From sequence record PV593634.1: DNA of 64,000 bases, one strand, 5' to 3'. Under the pieces are notes generated by a model, which was not told the DNA's origin, made no database searches, and saw only the letters and a program-made list of their open reading frames with translations. Position 1 is the first letter of the stretch, and every line of letters begins with the position of its first letter. Positions 914-56,053 of the stretch are shown one piece after another. A program made the position numbers and the translations under genes.

Positions 914-3109
914 TTACTCAGCTGTGAGGCTATCTTCGTTGTAAGCTTCCAGGACCGAGTCCATCATGTAAACGCCTTTACCGAACCAGAGGCGTGTAAC
1001 AGCATACATAACAGATTTAGAAGTCGGAGAGTCTTCACGGAATGAAGTCTCAACTTCCCAGTTGGAGATTACAGAACCGAAGAGGTCGCGGATGCGCGCT
1101 TCAGCGTTATCTTTGACACGAGCCAGATAACCTTGACGTCCCAGCTGCGGATCACCAGAAACCTGGATCCACTGGTCTTGCAGAATCTTCTCAACGCATA
1201 CGCACTTCCAAACGTTGGTCAGATCTTTCAGCACACTGTTGATGTTGTCATAAACAGTCGGGAGTGCAGGACGGCAGAACTGAGATTCCGTGATCGGAGT
1301 AACAGTGATAGAACCGTTAATCAGGTTGTTAGCTGCCGGGTCATCTGCTTCGAACTCGATCTGAGGATCGTGAGCGATACGCAGGATACGGTTAGCATCG
1401 TGGTCTGGCATCATGGATGCGTACATCTTACCATCAGCACCACCACCGGCTACGGCGAATGCGTACATCAGGTCGATGTTCAGAGAGAAGCGTTCCCAGG
1501 TAGGTTCGTTAATATAACGAGCATCCCAAAGGTTAATAGCCGCACGGCAAGCCGCCGCTTTATAAACTTCTGATTCAGGGATCATCGTAATACGAGCATT
1601 CAACATGTTCGCAGTAGAATAGATCTCTTCCTGAGTTTTAGGACGCAGCCACTCAGTAGCGCACGGAACAACAATGATGTCTTTACGCTTAGACATGAAG
1701 TTAATCAGTACATCTTTAATGCGCTGATTATAACCAACGTCCCACATAAAGGAAGCACGGTTACGAATAACATCTTTAACAGCCAGGCTGTTCTGGTATT
1801 CGATCAAGTATGCTTCGATCAGCTGCTGGTTCATTTCCCAACACTGTTTGGTAGAAACAACAGCATCTGGGTTAGAGGTATCAACAACCCACGGACCGTC
1901 TACAGCAGGAACCCAAGAAGTCGGAGCATCTGGGTATTTACCATTTTCATCAGCAAACGGACTGATACCGCCGTTAGCTTGCAGGAAGTGGTTCAGGCTG
2001 ATACGGGTACCAGTCAGTTTATCAGCAACGTCGAAGTTACCACCAAAGATGATAGTCTTGTACGGTTTACCAACGTGGTTGACCAGGTCGAACATGTTCA
2101 TGATAGCGAATGCAGGCAGACGCTTATTCAGAACGGTCGGAGCCATTTCACCACCGGCTACGTATTCTGCATCATACAGTTCTTTAGCCACAGCGTTCAA
2201 GTTCTGAGTATACATGTGAACTGCATCGAACGGAGCATCAACAACTTCCACTGGACGGTTAACGTTGTTACCGGTGTACTGATCAACAGCACTACGCAGA
2301 GAGTAACGAACGTTGTTAGAGTCAACAGTATCGAACATAGTAAAGGTGGTATCCGGGGTACCATTTACAGTATTAGCCGGAACACGAAGACCATTGTCCA
2401 GAAGTGTACCAATGTTCAGGATGAACGGATACGCACCGTTCTGGGTAACGAAACGAGAAACTTCGTTCCAGTCAGTCATAGCGAGATGACCAATAGAAGC
2501 GTAGTTAGCGTTATAAACGTCACCGATACCACCAATGATTTCAGCCAGCGGATAGAACTTACCTGCGGTGTCCAGAGGGATGTCTGGAACAGAAGCGTCA
2601 GCTTTGGTTTCGAAGACTTTAGCTTCGCCAACTTTACCTTCTGATTTCAGAACACCTGGGCAAACCCACAGACCAGCGATGGTCGGAGTGGTGTCGTCAG
2701 GGATCGGGTTACCCGCATCATCAAGAGAGTAGCTACCATCAAGTTCACGTTTGTAGTTGGGGATATCACCTTTAAAGATTGTGACACCAACAATAGTACG
2801 AGCGTTTACTTTGTTATTGGTAAGACGTTTGAAGCGGAAAGAAGATTGCCCAGCAGCACCCAACTTGGAGATTGCATAAGTAACCGGGTTATAGAACATA
2901 CCGAACGCATCAGTGATGTCGCCGAACTTTTCATTAAAAGTCCCGACAGCCACCGTGCCAGCTTTGGTAGTTCCTTTCGGAGTTACCGCAGCGAAGTCCG
3001 GGAAGTGAGCAGGAGAAGAGATAACCGGTACACCGGCCGGGAATTGCTCCCGACTAACGATACCGTTATTTACCACTTTACCTGGAATCACTTTTGAAAA
3101 AGTATTCAT
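914..3109 (-). CDS. Tail sheath protein (phiKZ gp29-like)
   Basis: 731 aa, strong codon bias, sheath-like C-terminus (MPDHDANRILR...NLINGSITV); position between tube and the gp28/27/26-terminase block. Confidence 0.85.
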   Translation of the reverse strand: MNTFSKVIPGKVVNNGIVSREQFPAGVPVISSPAHFPDFAAVTPKGTTKAGTVAVGTFNEKFGDITDAFGMFYNPVTYAISKLGAAGQSSFRFKRLTNNKVNARTIVGVTIFKGDIPNYKRELDGSYSLDDAGNPIPDDTTPTIAGLWVCPGVLKSEGKVGEAKVFETKADASVPDIPLDTAGKFYPLAEIIGGIGDVYNANYASIGHLAMTDWNEVSRFVTQNGAYPFILNIGTLLDNGLRVPANTVNGTPDTTFTMFDTVDSNNVRYSLRSAVDQYTGNNVNRPVEVVDAPFDAVHMYTQNLNAVAKELYDAEYVAGGEMAPTVLNKRLPAFAIMNMFDLVNHVGKPYKTIIFGGNFDVADKLTGTRISLNHFLQANGGISPFADENGKYPDAPTSWVPAVDGPWVVDTSNPDAVVSTKQCWEMNQQLIEAYLIEYQNSLAVKDVIRNRASFMWDVGYNQRIKDVLINFMSKRKDIIVVPCATEWLRPKTQEEIYSTANMLNARITMIPESEVYKAAACRAAINLWDARYINEPTWERFSLNIDLMYAFAVAGGGADGKMYASMMPDHDANRILRIAHDPQIEFEADDPAANNLINGSITVTPITESQFCRPALPTVYDNINSVLKDLTNVWKCVCVEKILQDQWIQVSGDPQLGRQGYLARVKDNAEARIRDLFGSVISNWEVETSFREDSPTSKSVMYAVTRLWFGKGVYMMDSVLEAYNEDSLTAE

Positions 3110-3215
3110 AGTAAAACCTCATTAATTTTTTTGATCAAAAAAATCAATCGTATGACCCTAAATCGGGCATGACAGTTAACGTTAACACGCATAACATTAA
3201 TTCAGGACTACAGTT

Positions 3216-4094
3216 ATGATTATAAATGGTTACGAGACTACAGTTGGTAGTCGATTTAAGTTGAAAGACAAGGTGGCGGAAACGATTAATGCTCTACAGA
3301 GCACCGACCGTTTAGAGTTGGTCGATAATCGTGGTGTCTACGCTGTAGACCACAAAAACGACTTTGGACTCCCTCACTTTGTATTTCCCATCTCTCTCAT
3401 TAACTACATGAGAGAACCTGTTACTGTATTTGATCAACGTGTCTACTTTAATAAGCAGGGCCGTAACATCAACGTACCAGAATACAACGTTATGCTCCTT
3501 GCAAGTATCCTTCAACAGGACGCTCAAAAAGGAAACTTAACACTCGTTAAAGCAGTGCGTCCTTTCACTATCAAAGCTTTTGCTAACTCTGTTGGTAATG
3601 CCATCAGTCGTACAGCAACTCTTGATATTGTTCAGAAGATAACACTGCGTATTATCCTCGCTCACTATTTTGTTTGTCTGGCGGAAAATCCAGGTAACGA
3701 TTTCACCTTCGTTAGTATGAACGCGGTATCTCGTTCTCTGCGTGTTAGCCAACAGCAAGTACTTGATGTGGTTGAAGATATCGGTTACATCAACACTCTT
3801 CCTCAGCTCCTGGCGGCTATCAAAGAACACCCTGCATTGTTCGCTCTGTCTCGTTTAGACATCGGTGGTTTAATTGCAGCTGGTTCGAGCGTATTCTTCT
3901 CTACCTCTGGCTTCCGTATGTTAATGGGTGCAGCTTTGGAGATGCCTACTTTATTTACAGCAATTTGCTGGGGTGCGGCTACTCAAAAGATTTACCAGAA
4001 TACTGCGGTTGGTCAAGAGTTGAATATAAAAGAAGACCGTACGGTTAGTAGTTTCATTGCGACCTCCGAGTACTACTTCACTGGTCGTTCTTAA
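3216..4094 (+). CDS. Conserved virion protein (phiKZ gp28-like)
   Basis: 292 aa, divergent from sheath; synteny. Confidence 0.6.
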   Translation: MIINGYETTVGSRFKLKDKVAETINALQSTDRLELVDNRGVYAVDHKNDFGLPHFVFPISLINYMREPVTVFDQRVYFNKQGRNINVPEYNVMLLASILQQDAQKGNLTLVKAVRPFTIKAFANSVGNAISRTATLDIVQKITLRIILAHYFVCLAENPGNDFTFVSMNAVSRSLRVSQQQVLDVVEDIGYINTLPQLLAAIKEHPALFALSRLDIGGLIAAGSSVFFSTSGFRMLMGAALEMPTLFTAICWGAATQKIYQNTAVGQELNIKEDRTVSSFIATSEYYFTGRS

Positions 4095-11681: not shown

Positions 11682-11773
11682 TCGCGTAATTACCTTGTCA
11701 AATAGTTAATCGCAGCACAGAGGCTTACAGGAGGTTTAATAACAAACTATTCATTTGAATAAGGAATCGGACA

Positions 11774-19890: not shown

Positions 19891-20028
19891 TTTCACATAA
19901 TATCTTCGACCAGTGTAATTAATCACTGTAAAGGTTTGAGTATATGAGCAATGCAATTTGAACAAGATGATTTGAGCAGGTGATCATTTCGTTACATAAT
20001 ATATACCAGTTCCATTAATTAATAAACC

Positions 20029-44983: not shown

Positions 44984-45004
44984 TAATCATATGTAAACAT
45001 ATTG

Positions 45005-45033
45005 AACCCTACCTCGCTGATGCGGGTAGGGTT
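45005..45033. terminator. Terminator hairpin between convergent genes
   Basis: AACCCTACC/GGTAGGGTT. Confidence 0.7.
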
Positions 45034-45049
45034 CGTGACGAATATATGT

Positions 45050-46414: not shown

Positions 46415-48328
46415 ATGTCTCTCGCTAACAACGAAGCTGGTCAGAACAACAACTCTTTCGATTCTAACAACAAAGGTAATAAAGACATGTCTCAAGAAAA
46501 CTCCCTGTTCGCTCTGCTGGGTCAAGCTAACCTGATCTCTTCCACTTCCTCTATCACCGAAGTCCGTGATGTGAGCAAGGCTCTGGAAGATACGATCGAG
46601 CACCTGCAGAAGAACACTGCTTCCCAGGCGCAGAAACTGTCCCTGCCGCAGCTGGTTCAGAACATCACTTCTGACATCAGTCCGCAACTGCCAGGTATCA
46701 CTCTGTCTACCCTGATCGGCGGCACTCGTTACATCATGCCTATCCTGTTCTTCAAACAGGGTATCACTGAGCAGACCGAAGTTATTCAGCTGGCTGGTGA
46801 AAACATGCCTCGTGGTATCGCTAAACACGCTGCAAGCTTCATGACCCCGGAACTGATGGAAAAGGTTAAGCAGGCTGGTTCTTACCACCAGAACACCACC
46901 CTGTCTAAAGTGATCATCATTGCTCCGACCGTTATCGATCTGGAAGATTACCTGAAGAACGCTTCTCGCATTGAAGATGTACCGAACTCAGTTCGTGACT
47001 ACATTCTGAAAGAATGGTCTAACGCTCTGTACAACTACGTCATCATCGAAGTAACTCGTCAGGGTGCTAAGTTCCCGTCTCCGTTCAAAGACGGTCAGGT
47101 ATTCGGTAAGGACAACGCGGCTGTTGCTCGTATCGAAGCTGTAAACAAAGCAACCGTAGATGGTAAATCTGCTCCGTACAACCTGGCAGTTAAACTGGCT
47201 ACCACCAACAAGAACAACACTCAGAACGTAAACAGCAATAACACCAAGTCTATTGCTACTACTCACCTGACTGTTTCTCTGGAAACGATGAACCCGCAGC
47301 AGTTTGCTCAGGCTCGTCAAGCTCATCCAGGTGCGATTGTTGGACCTCTGGTTCCGGTTGTATCTACTGGTCCTACTATTCCGGGCGAAACCCTGAACGG
47401 TAACAACAGCATGATCCCTGCGCTTCTGGGTCTGTACGCATCTATCGGTGCAAACAACATTCAGTACCTGTCTGAATCTTTCCGTGGTAAAGAAGTAGGT
47501 AACCGTGGTAACCTGTCCAACTTCAACAACTACATGACTCAGATGCTGGGCGCTGCTTATTCTCAGTCTGTACTGACTGATAAGAACATCACCAACGCGG
47601 CAGTTGTGAACAACTGGTTGAACACCTATGTGGCTCCTCGCGCAGTATACGTTCTGGATCTGGCATGCTTCACTGAAGACGTTTCTAACAGCGACTTCTG
47701 GTGGAACATTGTATCTCAGCCTTCTGGTTCTATCTACCACAAAGCTCTGATCAACATGCTGGACGTTCTGACCAACAACGGCTTCAGCGCTGTTCTGGCA
47801 GAGAACGCAGCTAAACCTCAGCGTAATCAGAAAACTGATTGGGTTCTGGGTGATGCTATCCTGGCTCCGACTCCGGTACTGCTGCCTTCTGGTATTGCAC
47901 GTGCTAAAGACGGTAAGTGGTTCAGCCTGGGTGAAGTTGATGCGATGTTCCTGCGTCAGGATCACTACTACGGTAACAACGAAGTTGCAGTAAACGAATA
48001 CCAGGGCCTGGTAGGTGGACAGACTCAGGGCGATATGAAGATGCGTCAGTACAACATCTACACTCGTCTGAACCAACTGTTCGATACCAACGTAAACATC
48101 ACTGGCTGGAAACGTCGTTTCATCTGGTCTGATGCGTTCTTCAACACCCTGGCTCGTGCAATGGCATCTGCTGGTACTCTGACCATGTCCTCTGCGTCTA
48201 TGGCTTCTATGTGGACCATGCAGCACAGCAATGACTACCTGAACTACACCATGTCCGCAGTTATTCAGCAAGGTCTGAACAACGCTGGTATGGGCGGCTT
48301 CACTGGTGCATACTCTCACCAGTACTAA
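46415..48328 (+). CDS. chmA: Chimallin, major phage nucleus shell protein (phiKZ gp54-like)
   Basis: 637 aa, extreme high-expression codon bias, immediately upstream of the nvRNAP beta-prime N-terminal gene. Confidence 0.85.
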   Translation: MSLANNEAGQNNNSFDSNNKGNKDMSQENSLFALLGQANLISSTSSITEVRDVSKALEDTIEHLQKNTASQAQKLSLPQLVQNITSDISPQLPGITLSTLIGGTRYIMPILFFKQGITEQTEVIQLAGENMPRGIAKHAASFMTPELMEKVKQAGSYHQNTTLSKVIIIAPTVIDLEDYLKNASRIEDVPNSVRDYILKEWSNALYNYVIIEVTRQGAKFPSPFKDGQVFGKDNAAVARIEAVNKATVDGKSAPYNLAVKLATTNKNNTQNVNSNNTKSIATTHLTVSLETMNPQQFAQARQAHPGAIVGPLVPVVSTGPTIPGETLNGNNSMIPALLGLYASIGANNIQYLSESFRGKEVGNRGNLSNFNNYMTQMLGAAYSQSVLTDKNITNAAVVNNWLNTYVAPRAVYVLDLACFTEDVSNSDFWWNIVSQPSGSIYHKALINMLDVLTNNGFSAVLAENAAKPQRNQKTDWVLGDAILAPTPVLLPSGIARAKDGKWFSLGEVDAMFLRQDHYYGNNEVAVNEYQGLVGGQTQGDMKMRQYNIYTRLNQLFDTNVNITGWKRRFIWSDAFFNTLARAMASAGTLTMSSASMASMWTMQHSNDYLNYTMSAVIQQGLNNAGMGGFTGAYSHQY

Positions 48329-48364
48329 GTCCAGATCGTAGTAAAGATAGTTATTTGAAATAAA

Positions 48365-48394
48365 CAGAAGGGTGGGTGAAAGCCCGCCCTTCTG
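48365..48394 (+). terminator. Terminator hairpin
   Basis: CAGAAGGGTGGG/CCCGCCCTTCTG. Confidence 0.7.
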
Positions 48395-48421
48395 TATCTT
48401 CACTTAAGGAGTTTATTTTTT

Positions 48422-50011
48422 ATGTCAAGTATGGCAGAGATACTTAACAGATTCGCCGATGAAAACATGATACCAAGTAAGCTGTTTGATGCAATGATTG
48501 CAGCTGGCGGGGTAACTCCACAAAGAGACGATCCAACTTTCTATACACCGATATATCCAGATTTCGTAGACTTCAATAAGAAGCACGATCAATCGGTAAG
48601 TACACCAATCTATCTGAACGACTTCGACTTTAATATAGAAGAAGACCGTCAGGCGGTTGTTGATCTACTTCGTACCGAATACGAAGGAAACAGTTTTGAT
48701 ACAGTAGCATCTTGCGGCTGTAAGAAATATCGCAGTAACATCTATGTGGGTTCTGGGTTCGTATGTGAAGACTGTGGGCATGAAGTAACCAAACCACTGA
48801 CCAGTAACATCGAAACTAAGGTGTGGCTGAAACTCCCGGCAAGAGTATCTGGCTTCATTAGTCCTGCAATGTACGCTGTGTTCTTAAGTAAGCTGAATAC
48901 CAAATCTCCGAAAGTAAACCTGGTGGACTATTGGGTTAACCCTGAGATTCGTAATGAGAAACGATTCAAGGATCCAACAAACAACGCATTTAAGATTGCC
49001 TGTAAGTTGGAAGCATTCCGTGAAACGTTGAATATCGAATTCGGTTATAACAGCTTTGTTGAAAACATCGATTTGATTATCCGTTCTGCAATTGAGAACG
49101 ATGTGGGTAAAGTACTGGATCTGACTGAATCCGATCGTAGTTACTTTGCCGAATTCTGGGAGCGTTATCGTAACCGTGTCGTATTCAACTATCTGCCATT
49201 GCCTAACAAAATCACTACGGTCGTTGAATCTGACCAACGTGACCGTTATGTAAACAAAGAGCAAACCGATCTAGATAAGATCTACTTTACTCTGGCGGAT
49301 ACGTATCCTGAGTTCGATGTGCGGGTTACTGAAAACGAAGATCTGATGGGTAAGAACCTGAAAGGTCTGGTGGATGCATTAGCCGAAGTTCAGAAGAACA
49401 TTCTGTTCGGTAAGAAAGGGATGATCCGATATCACGCAGGTGCTGGTAAACTTCCATTTACTGGTCGTTCCATCATTACCGGCGAGTCTGGGGTATGTCG
49501 TTCTGATACCATTATCCTTCCGTGGTTGTATGGTTTGACCTGTCTCGATAAACACCTAACTTCCTGGCTATATCGTAAAGGTTATACTCCTAAGAAAATC
49601 AAAGAAATCATTCGTACCGCAGCTCATACTAAGTTGCCGATTATCGAAGAGTTCTATACCTGGATCGAAACCAACCGTTACGCAATGGTAACAGCTGGCC
49701 GAAACCCATCAATCCAATATCTGTCTGCTCGTGGATTCTTCTGTAAGTTCAACCGTGATATTGATGATAAATCCATCCGTATCCCAATTACTACAGTAAA
49801 AGAATTTGGTGCCGACTTCGATGGAGACCAAATGTATGTTATCTTCATCCCGGACATGCTTTCTAAAGTAGAAGCATATTCTAGCTGGGGACACCATCAA
49901 ATGTTAGACCCGAACAAACCGTTCCGTGTCTCTCGTTTTGGTACCCACACTAAAACTAACCTGTTGAACGTAAACTCTCTGTTTATAGATGTCCCTATTG
50001 AGGAGGACTAA
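48422..50011 (+). CDS. Non-virion RNA polymerase beta-prime subunit, N-terminal part (phiKZ gp55-like)
   Basis: Zn finger CGC...CEDC, GRNPSI, catalytic ADFDGDQ. Confidence 0.9.
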   Translation: MSSMAEILNRFADENMIPSKLFDAMIAAGGVTPQRDDPTFYTPIYPDFVDFNKKHDQSVSTPIYLNDFDFNIEEDRQAVVDLLRTEYEGNSFDTVASCGCKKYRSNIYVGSGFVCEDCGHEVTKPLTSNIETKVWLKLPARVSGFISPAMYAVFLSKLNTKSPKVNLVDYWVNPEIRNEKRFKDPTNNAFKIACKLEAFRETLNIEFGYNSFVENIDLIIRSAIENDVGKVLDLTESDRSYFAEFWERYRNRVVFNYLPLPNKITTVVESDQRDRYVNKEQTDLDKIYFTLADTYPEFDVRVTENEDLMGKNLKGLVDALAEVQKNILFGKKGMIRYHAGAGKLPFTGRSIITGESGVCRSDTIILPWLYGLTCLDKHLTSWLYRKGYTPKKIKEIIRTAAHTKLPIIEEFYTWIETNRYAMVTAGRNPSIQYLSARGFFCKFNRDIDDKSIRIPITTVKEFGADFDGDQMYVIFIPDMLSKVEAYSSWGHHQMLDPNKPFRVSRFGTHTKTNLLNVNSLFIDVPIEED

Positions 50012-50694
50012 TGCTTAATGCAACGAGCGCATTTACCCGAGCGGTGAGTGGGTCGATGACCGATGCAAGTGCAGGATCCTACAATCGTTTCATGAACAAC
50101 TTCTATGAGAAATATGAGAACCTATCCGGCTGGCTAGGTGATACATTAACATCCGTTAAGGATGCTCATAAGAACTTTATGGATTCTCGAATGTGGGAGT
50201 TCTCTAACCGCGTTAATGGTAAAGATGGTCAGTATGTGGGTCGCTTTGAAATCGGTTATCTGAGTGAGGTTAAATACCAACAGCAGGCAACTGGTTTTAT
50301 GCGAGATTACATTATGGCTAACCCGTTATTGATGGAGTTGTATAATCAAGAACGAGTAAGTGGTTATGATGGTGATTTCAGTGCACTGTGTTCGGGCATG
50401 GGTACTGAGAACTATTATTATAACAAAGCGAACGATGGCATGTTGAACTTCGATAAAGAAGCGAATACATTAACCCGTACTAACTTTACCAGTTCCCGAG
50501 ACAGCATGACTCATTTGACATTCAAAGAGCGTGTTGATATCCATCGTACTTGGCAAGCGACCAACTTGCACATTGCGGCTAATCTGTTCGATCCTACTAA
50601 CATCATGGGTGGAGATATTCTATCCATCGAAGAAGTAGAGAAACGAAATGCAGAAATAGCAGCGAAAGCAGAAGCGGAAGCAAATCAAGAATAA
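50011..50694 (+). CDS. Conserved hypothetical protein
   Basis: 227 aa, coupled to the RNAP gene. Confidence 0.7.
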   Translation: MLNATSAFTRAVSGSMTDASAGSYNRFMNNFYEKYENLSGWLGDTLTSVKDAHKNFMDSRMWEFSNRVNGKDGQYVGRFEIGYLSEVKYQQQATGFMRDYIMANPLLMELYNQERVSGYDGDFSALCSGMGTENYYYNKANDGMLNFDKEANTLTRTNFTSSRDSMTHLTFKERVDIHRTWQATNLHIAANLFDPTNIMGGDILSIEEVEKRNAEIAAKAEAEANQE

Positions 50695-50767
50695 CTGAAC
50701 AGGCAATGGGGTGGAAACACCCCGTTGTCTATATCTCTGTAACTCTTATTATTTTTTGTTTAAAACT

Positions 50768-51226
50768 ATGATTAAGCCTACTGTTGTAATAGATATAGAA
50801 AGAATGGACAAAGCTTTGAAGTCTGAAACAGTTCACATACCTCATGGTTTATCCAGGGATCAAATCCGTAACCTTTTATCATCACACGCTCTAGGAGAAG
50901 ACATGCAAGTTTTTAAAGATGACCACCTTACTGTTAAACGTCCAGCCGATAACATTAACTACTATAAAGTTCATAATGCCCGCGGTGAACGTATTGGTAA
51001 GATTCTATTCCAAGAAGGAATGATCAGCCCTGAAGGTCTCAATGGTTTGACTAACGAATCTGTGATTGCGATTGTACTAGATCGTTTACAAGCACAGAAC
51101 CAAGGTAAGTTCAAATCCATCCATAACGATAAAGCTATCGAATGTCTGCAAGCTTCATTATCAGCTCTGCAAGCTCGTGTAGCCGATCGTGAGAAACGTG
51201 GTGTGTCTAACACACATGAGGCTTAA
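50768..51226 (+). CDS. Probable cyclic-nucleotide sponge (Acb4-like) with N-terminal extension
   Basis: FQEG...[16 protein letters not shown]...F...NDKAI..L...[10 protein letters not shown] pattern; family name from memory, unverified. Confidence 0.5.
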
Positions 51227-51229
51227 TAA

Positions 51230-51700
51230 ATGTCAGGAATGGGCTATGCAGAAGTAATGTTGGATATTAATTCGGGTTTACGGATTAGTAAGTTCATCAA
51301 CAAGCTCGAGGAGCAGTTAGGTGAAACTATTGATGCGATCCCGATTAACAAACTCCACGCAACTCTGATGTACGATTCTAGTAATCCAAAAATCTACCCA
51401 ACTATATCCAATGCTGCTTATAAGGCGGAAGTTATTGGTATTGATCTGCTGGGTGAGCTTGGATCTAAGTGGGGAGCTGCAGTCCTGTTGCTTAAGTGTC
51501 CTGAACTTATCAAACGGTTCAAACAGCTTAAGGATATGGGATTCAACCACTCGTACGACGATCTGTTGTTACACGTCTCTTTAAGTTATGGGGAAGCAAC
51601 TTCCAAGTTGTGGCCTCTACTTCAAGAAGCTGAGAGAAAAGGTGAACTACCAAGTTCCGTGGTATTGTGCAAAGAAACCTGGTCAGTGTGTGACGACTAA
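51230..51700 (+). CDS. acb1: Acb1-like 2H phosphoesterase (T4 gp57B family)
   Basis: LHATLMY and HSYDDLLLHVSLSY give the two HxT/S motifs; 156 aa. Confidence 0.75.
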   Translation: MSGMGYAEVMLDINSGLRISKFINKLEEQLGETIDAIPINKLHATLMYDSSNPKIYPTISNAAYKAEVIGIDLLGELGSKWGAAVLLLKCPELIKRFKQLKDMGFNHSYDDLLLHVSLSYGEATSKLWPLLQEAERKGELPSSVVLCKETWSVCDD

Positions 51701-51778
51701 TGTGTGGGGTTAAATCAGGGTGCGGATTCTATCCGCTTTTGTTAACTAGCCTATGTTGCTTAGACATAGAGGTCCCTT

Positions 51779-51934
51779 ATGTTTAATAACCCTAACGATA
51801 TAGTTGTGGCGATCTCCGCTTTCTTTACAGGTTTGGTTGCTCTGGTGTTTTTACCAGCGTGCCTTAACGGTATTACAAATGCTGTTAAAGATCTGTTGAA
51901 AGCTGACAACGTGACTATACGTAACAAACACTAA
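51779..51934 (+). CDS. Small membrane protein (51 aa)
   Basis: Below the ORF-track cutoff; GAGG RBS; IVVAISAFFTGLVALVFLPACL helix. Confidence 0.55.
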   Translation: MFNNPNDIVVAISAFFTGLVALVFLPACLNGITNAVKDLLKADNVTIRNKH

Positions 51935-51940
51935 GCTAAA

Positions 51941-51968
51941 CAGGATCTCCCTTAATTGGGAGATCCTG
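51941..51968 (+). terminator. Terminator hairpin
   Basis: CAGGATCTCCC/GGGAGATCCTG. Confidence 0.75.
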
Positions 51969-52020
51969 AACTATGCTATTCCTTTTATCTTTTGACCAAA
52001 CTTACTACTAGGAGTCCGAA

Positions 52021-52431
52021 ATGGCCAAAGGTGTTGTAGGTACGATGGATACGGTTGGATTCATTACAGAGCCAACGGTGAAGATCGACCGACTAATTGC
52101 ATATTGGTTTGCTAACCGAATAGACCAATGCATGATTATCCGTAAAGTTCACAGCTACCAATATGTGGTTGCTAAACATCAGGGTGATCAAAAATCTGAA
52201 GAACGTCTTATTCAGGATATAGAAAATAACCTGCGAGAGTATCTACTGGAGTGTTTCGACTCAGCATCTGTAACTGCCTGGGCTAAACGCGAAAACGAAG
52301 GTGACAAGATGTTTACGCTTGTTATCTCTGGTGTGGTATTCCAAGACGGAATCCAATACGAAATAAACAAATCTGTGCTCATTAACGGTAGTACATACAA
52401 ATTGATCGAAATCGGTCGAGGTGGAAAATAA
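52021..52431 (+). CDS. Conserved hypothetical protein
   Basis: 136 aa. Confidence 0.7.
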   Translation: MAKGVVGTMDTVGFITEPTVKIDRLIAYWFANRIDQCMIIRKVHSYQYVVAKHQGDQKSEERLIQDIENNLREYLLECFDSASVTAWAKRENEGDKMFTLVISGVVFQDGIQYEINKSVLINGSTYKLIEIGRGGK

Positions 52432-53213: not shown

Positions 53214-53239
53214 TAGGCTAGTGGGTGTTTAGGAGAGTT

Positions 53240-54379
53240 ATGAAAAAGAAATTCTTCGGTGTTCAAACCACCGACCAACACTGTCTGCACCCACATACGC
53301 CGACACGTCATATCCTGGCTAACCTGGATAACTTCTATTATAAACACCTCAACTTGGACGAGGTGGATTTCAACGTACTGACCGGTGATTTCTTTCACGA
53401 CTTAGCATCTGCTAACGACCCGAATATGTTGCTGTGTCAACGTTGGATCAAAAAGCATTTACAGATATGTCATGACAAGAAAGTTCATGTTCGTATTCTG
53501 GAAGGTACGTCCTCACATGACTGGGGACAACCTGAACTGTTTGATATCCTGAAACCTAAGGATACACCGTACATTAAGTACATCAATACTTTATCCATTG
53601 AGTATATTCCAGAACTCGATATCAACGTTATGTATGTGCCGGATAACTTTGGTCATACCTCTACTGAGATTATTTACGAGCAAGCTTTGAAGTTGTTGGC
53701 TTCCCATAACTTAAAGCAAGTTGACTTTATTCTGTTGCATGGTGGTTTCGATTATCAGTTACCTCCAATTGCTAACAAGAACGGATCTTTGTACGATTCG
53801 ATCAAATGGTCGGCTTTGGCTAAGCACGCTATATTCAGTGGACACATTCACAAACCAAGTCAGAAACTAAACATTCACTGTGCTGGTAGTTTCGATCGTA
53901 CAGCGTTTGGTGAGATGCATCCAAAAGGTGCATATCAATTCTGGTGGGGTAAGGACGAGTTCAAGGCTGAGTTCTGGGAGAACAAGAATGCCCTGATTTA
54001 TGACAAGATCCTTATTAACCGTGAGATGACTAGCAAGCAAATTCAAAAGGAACTGAATACTTATTTAGCTAAGAACCCACCTAAGAACACTCACATCCGT
54101 TTAGTTGGTGGTTTGGCTGCTACTACCGCAAGCATAATCAATGACTACAAGGAACAGTACCCAATGTACTTCTTCGACGTAGATAACGTTAAAGAAGATA
54201 ACATTGAGATTGACGATACCTTATATACACCTGAAATGTATAAAGGTGTTGCGTTAACGGAAACTAACCTCGTGGATAGTTTGTTTAACTTTATGCAACC
54301 CACTCTTTTACAACTGGACGATACTATCGATCAGGATATGTTAAGGGAGTTACTCTTAGAGGTAATGGTAGATGGTTGA
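53240..54379 (+). CDS. SbcD/Mre11-like metallophosphoesterase nuclease
   Basis: TDQHC, LTGDFF, EGTSSHD, LHG, SGHIH motifs. Confidence 0.9.
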   Translation: MKKKFFGVQTTDQHCLHPHTPTRHILANLDNFYYKHLNLDEVDFNVLTGDFFHDLASANDPNMLLCQRWIKKHLQICHDKKVHVRILEGTSSHDWGQPELFDILKPKDTPYIKYINTLSIEYIPELDINVMYVPDNFGHTSTEIIYEQALKLLASHNLKQVDFILLHGGFDYQLPPIANKNGSLYDSIKWSALAKHAIFSGHIHKPSQKLNIHCAGSFDRTAFGEMHPKGAYQFWWGKDEFKAEFWENKNALIYDKILINREMTSKQIQKELNTYLAKNPPKNTHIRLVGGLAATTASIINDYKEQYPMYFFDVDNVKEDNIEIDDTLYTPEMYKGVALTETNLVDSLFNFMQPTLLQLDDTIDQDMLRELLLEVMVDG

Positions 54380-55936: not shown

Positions 55937-55944
55937 TTAACACA

Positions 55945-55970
55945 GGGAGTATGCCAGAAGGCATACTCCC
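55945..55970 (+). terminator. Terminator hairpin
   Basis: GGGAGTATGCC/GGCATACTCCC. Confidence 0.75.
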
Positions 55971-56053
55971 CATTATGTTTGTTTGTTGGAATTATTTAAG
56001 AACTAGCATATCTATTAGCTGTGAATTTAAGTTGGACTAAATAATTATAAACC

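Follow-up and report, generated by a model that had tools for sequence, protein, structure and literature searches.

A Tad1-family and Acb1-family gene pair in a variable core-block slot of the nucleus-forming Shewanella phage SXP01

Tad1 (Thoeris anti-defence 1) is known by its founding activity, which is directed against Thoeris via glycocyclic ADP-ribose (gcADPR). In nucleus-forming jumbo phages, gp184/Tad1 of phiKZ is an accepted anti-defence protein (PMC13282480, PMC12676376); it is reported to inhibit both Thoeris and CBASS, a phage defence that signals by cyclic oligonucleotides, and according to a 2026 review no other anti-defence protein has been described for jumbo phages (PMC13282480). 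Acb1, known from T4 gp57B and from the structures of the proteins of Erwinia phage FBB1 (7T26/7T27) and Burkholderia phage BCSR5 (9Q2G/9Q2Y), acts on adenosine-containing di- and trinucleotides and spares both cyclic di-GMP (cGG) and cyclic tetraadenylate (cA4) (PMC9117128). Different immune-signal neutralisers are found clustered or fused, as in the Tad2-Acb4 and Sequestin sponge-sponge fusions and in T4 islands (10.1101/2025.07.12.664507; PMC11724313), and surveys of the AntiDefenseFinder type list tad1 and acb1 matches in jumbo phages (PMC13573597, PMC11724313). We analysed positions 50768–51968 of a 64,000-nucleotide stretch (hereafter the window) of Shewanella phage SXP01 (PV593634.1, 269,939 bp; host S. 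xiamenensis), in which window and record coordinates coincide. The three open reading frames (ORFs) of this segment are best explained as an accessory anti-signalling gene pair that occupies a variable slot within the core block of chimalliviruses, with a conserved gene of no relation to the pair, for a small membrane protein, coming after it; we give this reading a probability of about three in four.

50768–51226, + strand: ORF A, Tad1 family, 152 residues, of which 1–45 form an extension and 46–152 the Tad1 core
51230–51700, + strand: ORF B, Acb1-family 2H phosphodiesterase, 156 residues, with the tetrad H43-x-T45/H115-x-S117
51779–51934, + strand: ORF C, single-pass membrane protein of 51 residues, with a hydrophobic segment (residues 8–26) and a basic C-terminus ending in RNKH

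The three genes are contiguous, as an earlier sequence-only reading had stated, lie on the + strand and are all coding. That reading had called them a two-mechanism anti-CBASS cassette, a proposal of which one part stands: the families, the conserved pairing and the fusions described below argue for an anti-signalling pair, and a two-mechanism pair is the best reading of A and B from their sequences. The restriction to CBASS and the inclusion of ORF C do not stand. The label "anti-CBASS" is too narrow and "anti-CBASS plus anti-Thoeris" fits better, because the founding activity of Tad1 is anti-Thoeris and the residues of the trinucleotide pocket are missing from ORF A. Family membership, fold, motif conservation, adjacency and fusion, and a patchy distribution are all observed. 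In the deposited record ORF A starts at 50903 (107 residues) under the name "ABC transporter ATPase", ORF B is named "RNA ligase" and ORF C is left unannotated; the present analysis corrects these three annotation errors.

ORF A, previously put forward as a putative sponge, is a Tad1 homologue by both sequence and fold. Against PDB chains, phmmer aligned it with CmTad1 (8kbb, E 4.5e-10), with CbTad1 and others (E about 2e-3) and, over the C-terminal 72 residues, with phiKZ gp184 (8y6v chain I, E 4e-6). The large homologue search covered 1.8 billion proteins, and at E ≤ 0.001 the phmmer family of ORF A comprises 1740 clusters. Among 145 of these proteins that were aligned, G93, R137 and R141 are invariant, and N120 is nearly so. 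The AlphaFold2 model (mean predicted local distance difference test, pLDDT, 92.5) consists of helices 10–18 and 30–41, four strands within residues 46–81, and helices 96–110 and 118–143. When this model was compared with the PDB by Foldseek, all 17 of the best matches listed were Tad1, with target-normalised TM-scores of 0.68–0.75, and only Tad1 chains were found below E 1e-4.

The known ligand pockets and oligomer interface of Tad1 (10.1101/2023.11.15.567273) were carried onto ORF A via an ungapped HMMER alignment:

gcADPR/dinucleotide pocket: CbTad1 F82, N92, R109 and R113 correspond to ORF A Q110, N120, R137 and R141 (three retained out of four)
trinucleotide pocket: CmTad1 R88 and T95 correspond to ORF A I118 and E125 (lost)
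hexamer interface: CmTad1 Q98, E99, M102, W103 and K106 correspond to ORF A Q128, A129, S132, A133 and A136 (mostly lost)

The R88/T95 pocket and the hexamer interface mark a trinucleotide-binding subset of Tad1 and not the whole family. These residues lead to the prediction that ORF A still binds gcADPR and/or dinucleotides, does not bind trinucleotides, and may not be a hexamer. ORF A shares with the Tad1 structures (CbTad1, 7UAV/7UAW; CmTad1, 8KBB) a core of four strands and two helices, the Arg-x3-Arg and Asn residues, a similar size and its phage origin, but differs from them in the Phe to Gln exchange of the pocket, in the lack of conservation of the trinucleotide Arg/Thr and of most interface residues, in a two-helix extension of 45 residues, in an internal start led by a Shine-Dalgarno sequence, and in having an Acb1 partner gene. 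With phiKZ gp184 (8Y6V chain I) it has in common a Tad1 domain encoded by a nucleus-forming jumbo phage. gp184 differs in being a protein of 230 residues that is processed and injected, with an N-terminal part wedged in the capsid and a gene about 150 kb away from the block that runs from the non-virion RNA polymerase (nvRNAP) to SbcD. This capsid-anchored protein is the only Tad1 of phiKZ; SXP01 has no gp184-type gene, and the free-standing protein from the slot is the single Tad1 that it encodes.

No Shine-Dalgarno sequence precedes the ATG at 50768 from which ORF A starts, and a strong AGGAG stands five bases in front of the internal ATG at 50903. The latter encodes M46, precisely the first residue of the Tad1 core, and a start there would give a core-only form of 107 residues. 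Coding was assessed by counting codon differences in each frame against L009, a metagenomic relative that is about 82–87% identical: the first 45 codons of ORF A show 11 synonymous and 15 non-synonymous differences, and the corresponding counts for the other two frames are 3/24 and 1/27. The extension is conserved across genera, the Serratia phages aligning from residue 6 with about 52% identity; its two helices are modelled at a pLDDT of 80–90, and the 48-residue PHROG family phrog_17259 matches it. In the relative L012 (a Logan contig whose Acb1 is 97% identical), a clean deletion of about 117 bp, at about L012 position 3980 and opposite window positions 50768–50885, removes the extension and leaves the Shine-Dalgarno-led core ORF; the 45 residues are coding yet dispensable. 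In Kosakonia phage Kc263 the extension is a separate small ORF (L006 4947–5153), in another frame than the Tad1-like::Acb1 fusion of that phage, so that in certain phages the module may exist as a small protein of its own. SXP01 probably makes the 152-residue form and possibly the 107-residue form as well. A GTG at 50711 was rejected as the start of ORF A: translation from it would traverse the hairpin at 50701–50730, and it is ruled out because near-identical phages carry indels of 1–2 nt at 50752–50761. Other sequencing runs, which contain near-identical phages, show the T/A run at these latter positions, upstream of ORF A, altered in length by −1, +1 and +2 nt.

ORF B is an Acb1 homologue, as testified by Pfam, a sequence profile, the catalytic tetrad and the fold, in line with the Acb1-like 2H phosphoesterase of the sequence-only reading. 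It scores 48.9 bits against the Pfam family PF23474 (Acb1; cut-off 27; E 7e-13), the sole Pfam family at E ≤ 0.1, and a profile built from 11 of its homologues aligns with FBB1 Acb1 (7t26, E 2.3e-6) and with the BCSR5 protein deposited as Acb1. The catalytic HxT/HxT tetrad of Acb1 is formed by H44, T46, H113 and T115 (Hobbs 2022, PMC9117128); H43-A-T45 and H115-V-S117 of ORF B align to both motifs of 7t26 and are invariant in the 11 homologues, the second motif carrying Ser instead of Thr. The AlphaFold2 model has a pLDDT of 89.7, and its top five Foldseek matches, from entries 9q2y, 9q2g, 7t26 and 7t27, are all deposited as Acb1, with plant cyclic phosphodiesterase (CPDase), Usb1 and LigT ranked lower. 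Like the Acb1 proteins known from T4, FBB1 and BCSR5, it is a phage accessory gene product with a compact 2H fold of about 150 residues and an HxT/HxT(S) tetrad; unlike them, it has HxS as its second motif, lies in a core-block slot and is fused in some relatives, and its identity to them is about 15–20% in fold alignments. Its clade-conserved residues Y6, W81, E149 and W151 are unmapped candidates for the stacking and lid residues of Acb1, and its substrate range is taken from the family, since those residues could not be mapped.

The association of the two genes is conserved. A tblastn search with Tad1 and Acb1 proteins against 50,697 phage records showed that at least 16 distinct jumbo phages have Tad1 followed by Acb1 at a distance of no more than 20 nt (SXP01, OBP, Sureiya, Yubaba, N1M2, Kc263 and ten Aeromonas phages), and these infect Shewanella, Serratia, Pseudomonas, Klebsiella, Kosakonia and Aeromonas. 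The slot position is the same in all seven inspected loci (OBP, Sureiya, N1M2, pAEv1810, Kc263, pEt-SU and AH04), where the pair, or Acb1, lies between the phrog_3254 gene on one side and a small ORF with the phrog_3294 gene on the other; in pEt-SU, Acb1 occupies the slot without Tad1. The slot-resident Acb1 proteins form a single clade (support 99/98), apart from the non-slot Acb1 proteins of Aphrodite1 and Klebsiella phage Miami. The whole SXP01 record holds exactly one Tad1 and one Acb1 (PF23474, 48.5 bits). A metatranscriptome contig of a relative (175 nt, from wastewater) spans the A/B junction, a weak indication for which DNA carry-over is possible.

In six genomes, namely AH04, Kc263 and four uncultivated jumbo genomes of 260–270 kb from IMG/VR (L019–L022), the two domains are fused in frame, a Tad1-like N-terminal domain being joined directly to Acb1 in an ORF of about 240–265 residues:

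L008 4737–5462: fusion ORF AH04_67
L006 5131–5868: fusion ORF of Kc263
L019–L022, about 2670–3465 in each: fusion ORFs of the four uncultivated genomes

The fused Tad1-like domain is recognised by hhalign with a probability of 97–98% (AH04, Kc263). These two aligned fusion domains lack one loop and the R...R...G motif, and with it both invariant arginines. Long Tad1-containing proteins were rejected as further Tad1-Acb1 fusions: Acb1 was found in none of the ten tested, one of which has an RyR domain. The Tad1 domain (residues 29–115) of the 235-residue protein P0128 is fused to an RyR domain (PF02026, E 3e-9). PF24729, a precomputed assignment on two homologues, gave no match for them in the local Pfam scan.

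SXP01 is a nucleus-forming, chimallin-encoding jumbo phage, and the genes that flank the pair belong to its core block:

46415–48328, upstream of the slot: chimallin (PHROG "nuclear shell protein", E 1e-110)
48422–50011, just upstream of the slot: nvRNAP beta' subunit
50011–50694, + strand: phrog_3254-family core gene, 227 residues, left border of the slot (PHROG E 3e-60)
52021–52431, + strand: phrog_3294-family core gene, 136 residues, right border of the slot (PHROG E 2.4e-36)
53225–54379, downstream of the slot: SbcD-like nuclease

The order chimallin, nvRNAP beta', phrog_3254, slot, phrog_3294 and, farther on, SbcD is common to SXP01, phiKZ, Miami and Aphrodite1. The phrog_3254 gene, represented by gp59 in phiKZ, stands at the left border in all relatives inspected, and the phrog_3294 gene, represented by gp62 in phiKZ, was found in 78 phage records; in RAY only the side from phrog_3294 to SbcD was identified, genes farther upstream being unassigned to the block. 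The content between the two border genes varies from phage to phage, so the claim that the segment interrupts a conserved nvRNAP-to-SbcD synteny is borne out, the same flanking core genes enclosing different slot genes in phiKZ, Miami and Aphrodite1:

phiKZ slot: gp60 and gp61 (L013, NC_004629, 14670–15456), unrelated to Tad1 or Acb1
Miami slot: two 120-residue genes and an IS605-type TnpB transposase (L016 2240–4152; OrfB_IS605, E 2e-29)
Aphrodite1 slot: one unrelated 158-residue gene
RAY slot: other small genes

The transposase in the Miami slot is a sign that the site is an insertion hotspot. Miami and Aphrodite1 carry their Acb1 outside the slot; phiKZ, RAY and PCH45 have none, and RAY has no Tad1 either. 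Patchy occupancy of this kind is what counter-defence cargo is expected to show, and by their position phiKZ gp60 and gp61 are candidate anti-defence genes. phiKZ gp60 and gp61, Aphrodite1 gp069 and RAY gp235 were also considered as diverged Tad1 or Acb1 proteins and rejected, BLASTP, hhalign and Pfam searches being empty. Two genes downstream of Acb1 in Miami (L031 1387–1854), a 107-residue ORF (2338–2661) resembles Tad2 (Pfam Tad2-like, E 8.5e-5, 23.4 bits, just below the cut-off of 25), and the two may form a second enzyme-sponge pairing with another sponge family. The region 50700–52000 is near-identical in 17 public sequencing runs (0.76–0.93 of the sampled words), including amphibian, pig and gut metagenomes, and SXP01-like phages therefore appear to be widespread.

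ORF C is a real gene for a membrane protein of 51 residues, as had been proposed, with a coding signal (19 synonymous and 11 non-synonymous codon differences from L009, against 4/27 and 0/30 in the other frames) and one hydrophobic segment, whose Kyte-Doolittle maximum over 19 residues is 2.5; by the positive-inside rule its C-terminus is predicted to face the cytoplasm. Positional homologues occur in OBP (tblastn E 1e-8), Sureiya, N1M2, Kc263, pEt-SU, AH04, L019, L021, L022 and Miami. They have the same transmembrane layout and an MA[VT]RNK-type C-terminal end, and they always lie directly upstream of the phrog_3294 gene. ORF C matches no Pfam or PHROG family, and tblastn reaches its close relatives only; the atlas search gave scores of at most 0.79, below the level of more than a lead, and a word-based homologue search returned only two near-identical proteins. 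Homologues are kept in pEt-SU, which has no Tad1, and in Miami, where the slot contains neither Tad1 nor Acb1; the Acb1 of Miami lies about 150 kb from the slot, yet the ORF C homologue still adjoins phrog_3294. This distribution and the terminator-like site that divides B from C assign ORF C to the conserved backbone. Co-occurrence analysis, which had been suggested as a check, thus revealed a conserved pairing of A with B, but no co-variation of ORF C with anti-defence genes. ORF C tracks phrog_3294 and not the A-B pair, and nothing supports the suggestion that it is a third counter-defence.

From 5' to 3', the segment is laid out as a hairpin, A and B with a 3-nt gap between them, a terminator-like site, C, and a second hairpin:

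50701–50730, + strand: strong hairpin with a 13-bp stem and a GAAA loop, directly 3' of the phrog_3254 gene and before ORF A
51722–51742, + strand: intrinsic-terminator-like site between B and C, with a 6-bp GC-rich stem (51722–51736), a 3-nt loop and a T run
51941–51968, + strand: strong hairpin with a perfect 11-bp stem, after ORF C (−24.1 kcal/mol, z −6.3)

The first hairpin (−23.3 kcal/mol, z −5.9, with none of 200 shuffled sequences as stable) is kept in the relatives L009 and L012. The site between B and C comes from a consensus scan and its fold is modest (−13.4 kcal/mol, z −1.7). The segment had been said to end in a terminator, and a strong hairpin indeed lies exactly at that end; it has no T run on the + strand, the scan showing a T tail on the − strand only. 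Other strong GC-rich hairpins lie 3' of genes in the same block (44984–45049, 48329–48421 and 55937–55975), and since a hairpin after a gene is the rule there, hairpins are no specific mark of a cassette. The 3-nt gap and the bracketing hairpins are consistent with a single transcription unit for A and B. A recurrent intergenic motif, ATATTAT(C/T)T...TGTA(T/A), occurs on the + strand at 20026, 31029, 37513, 46311, 56051 and 61247, upstream of six gene blocks, that of chimallin among them, with a weaker copy at 11771, and probably represents one promoter class of SXP01. This ATATTATCT...TGTA class was not found before A, C or the next gene, where the best scores were at most 4, against 23–30 at the true sites, and a sigma-70-like scan of the stretch gave sites no commoner than in shuffled sequence.

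Several points weigh against reading A and B as an anti-signalling pair. Fold alignments show only about 30% identity between ORF A and CmTad1 and only about 20% between ORF B and FBB1 Acb1. 2H enzymes include RNA-repair enzymes as well. The base-stacking aromatics, adenine-reading Glu and C-terminal lid of Acb1 (Y12, W74, F107, E141 and W147; PMC9117128) are unaligned in ORF B, where sequence alignments end at residue 121–128. ORF A has no recognisable promoter of the ATATTATCT...TGTA class before it, nor is there one inside 50.7–52.0 kb. The pocket exchange from F82 to Q110 is invariant in the SXP01 clade, so the ligand of ORF A may differ. The fused Tad1-like part, having lost the invariant arginines, cannot be a canonical sponge, and this loss raises the chance that the Tad1-like part may serve Acb1 otherwise. 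A and B would then be a physically coupled unit that captures and destroys, in which the Tad1-like protein binds or oligomerises Acb1 and feeds it substrate or concentrates substrate for it, its classical sponge role being secondary or lost. The recurrence, in six genomes, of in-frame fusions of a truncated Tad1-like domain without the arginine motif speaks for such coupling, as do the invariant gene order with a spacing of 1–20 nt, the clade-specific F-to-Q change in the pocket and the loss of hexamer-interface residues. We nevertheless consider it unlikely for SXP01, whose ORF A keeps both arginines and the asparagine of the pocket, as in a working sponge, and pEt-SU retains Acb1 without any Tad1. 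A broader version, in which we place little confidence, makes the Tad1-like protein and Acb1 one coupled module aimed mainly at cyclic triadenylate (cA3)/NucC signalling, in CBASS and in type III CRISPR, and the slot a general anti-defence hotspot. The fused arginine-less forms would then be an evolutionary end point, with the sponge domain as the substrate-capturing or oligomerising arm of a degrading enzyme, and the phiKZ slot (gp60, gp61) and other chimallivirus slots would hold undiscovered inhibitors. Type III CRISPR is one of the few defences reported to be effective against nucleus-forming phages.

Packaging and injection of ORF A in the manner of phiKZ gp184/Tad1, with the N-terminal extension as the packaging or anchoring part, would be compatible with a sponge. 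The phiKZ protein has a capsid-anchored N-terminal part and is injected (PMC12676376), the additional N-terminal module of ORF A is conserved, has proved dispensable in L012 and is encoded in a frame of its own in Kc263, and some homologues are annotated as structural proteins. This is decidedly unlikely, given that the extension is 45 residues long against about 150 in gp184 and bears no similarity to it, only the C-terminal core aligning, and that inspection of the relatives' sequences revealed no conserved S/A/G-x-E protease site before the core. It is highly improbable that ORF B is instead a 2H enzyme of RNA repair or RNA-end processing (a 2'-5' ligase or cyclic phosphodiesterase), acting for example against host anticodon nucleases. 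PHROG 755 is labelled RNA ligase, and CPDase, LigT and Usb1 do appear among the lower-ranked fold matches; the two best fold and profile matches are, however, deposited as Acb1, the only Pfam family retrieved is Acb1, above its cut-off, a length of 156 residues fits Acb1 better than the approximately 175–185 of LigT, and the gene adjoins that of a nucleotide-signal sponge, to which it is fused in relatives. Most improbable in our view is that all three genes form one counter-defence cassette in which the role of the membrane peptide is to block effectors that act on membranes. The three do adjoin one another on the same strand, ORF C does encode a real and conserved membrane protein, and small unannotated neighbours of anti-defence genes are often anti-defence genes themselves, but the terminator-like site separates B from C, the Miami homologue of ORF C adjoins phrog_3294 with no Tad1 or Acb1 in the slot, and pEt-SU keeps C without Tad1.

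For the anti-signalling pair, we infer ligands, activity, timing and benefit to the phage along the following lines. The phage nucleus would shield the DNA, while phage proteins and RNAs would remain exposed to cytoplasmic sensors able to make second messengers, such as the cGAS/DncV-like nucleotidyltransferases (CD-NTases) of CBASS, the Toll/interleukin-1 receptor (TIR) proteins of Thoeris and possibly Cas10 of type III CRISPR; because of this exposure, signalling defences would still be relevant to chimalliviruses. In one such case, type III CRISPR-NucC is reported to act against PCH45 (PMC13282480). Through its HxT/HxS tetrad, ORF B would break down cyclic di- and trinucleotides that contain adenosine. 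ORF A would bind gcADPR and cyclic dinucleotides in a pocket at the dimer interface (N120, R137 and R141) and so withdraw them, including dinucleotides that Acb1 leaves uncut, 3'2'-cyclic GMP-AMP (3'2'-cGAMP) and cGG. Since ORF A is without the trinucleotide pocket, trinucleotides would be left to ORF B, and gcADPR and the Acb1-resistant dinucleotides to ORF A. The pocket residues suggest in this way that ORF A divides the work with Acb1, with a reach that takes in Thoeris in addition to CBASS.

Taken by themselves, ORF A and ORF B are further members of well-known families, arranged as in any ordinary anti-defence island. Of greater interest as leads are the fused variants and the slot, both of which are found for the most part beyond the window. 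In contrast to the described sponge-sponge fusions, a sponge is here paired with, or fused to, a signal-degrading enzyme and not a second sponge, and in the literature searched we came across no account of the conserved Tad1-Acb1 pair, its fusion or the slot. The locus indicates that a free-standing Tad1 homologue is joined to an Acb1 homologue across a whole clade of nucleus-forming phages, with hosts in Shewanella, Serratia, Pseudomonas, Klebsiella, Kosakonia, Erwinia and Aeromonas. It offers a test bed for how a sponge and a degrading enzyme share the signal space of cyclic nucleotides and gcADPR, for the role of a sponge domain once it is fused to the enzyme without its ligand arginines, and for which cytoplasmic signalling defences matter to phages whose DNA is shelled by protein. 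The variable slot in an otherwise conserved block moreover marks out genes of model phages, gp60 and gp61 of phiKZ for example, in which anti-defence activity can be sought by screening.

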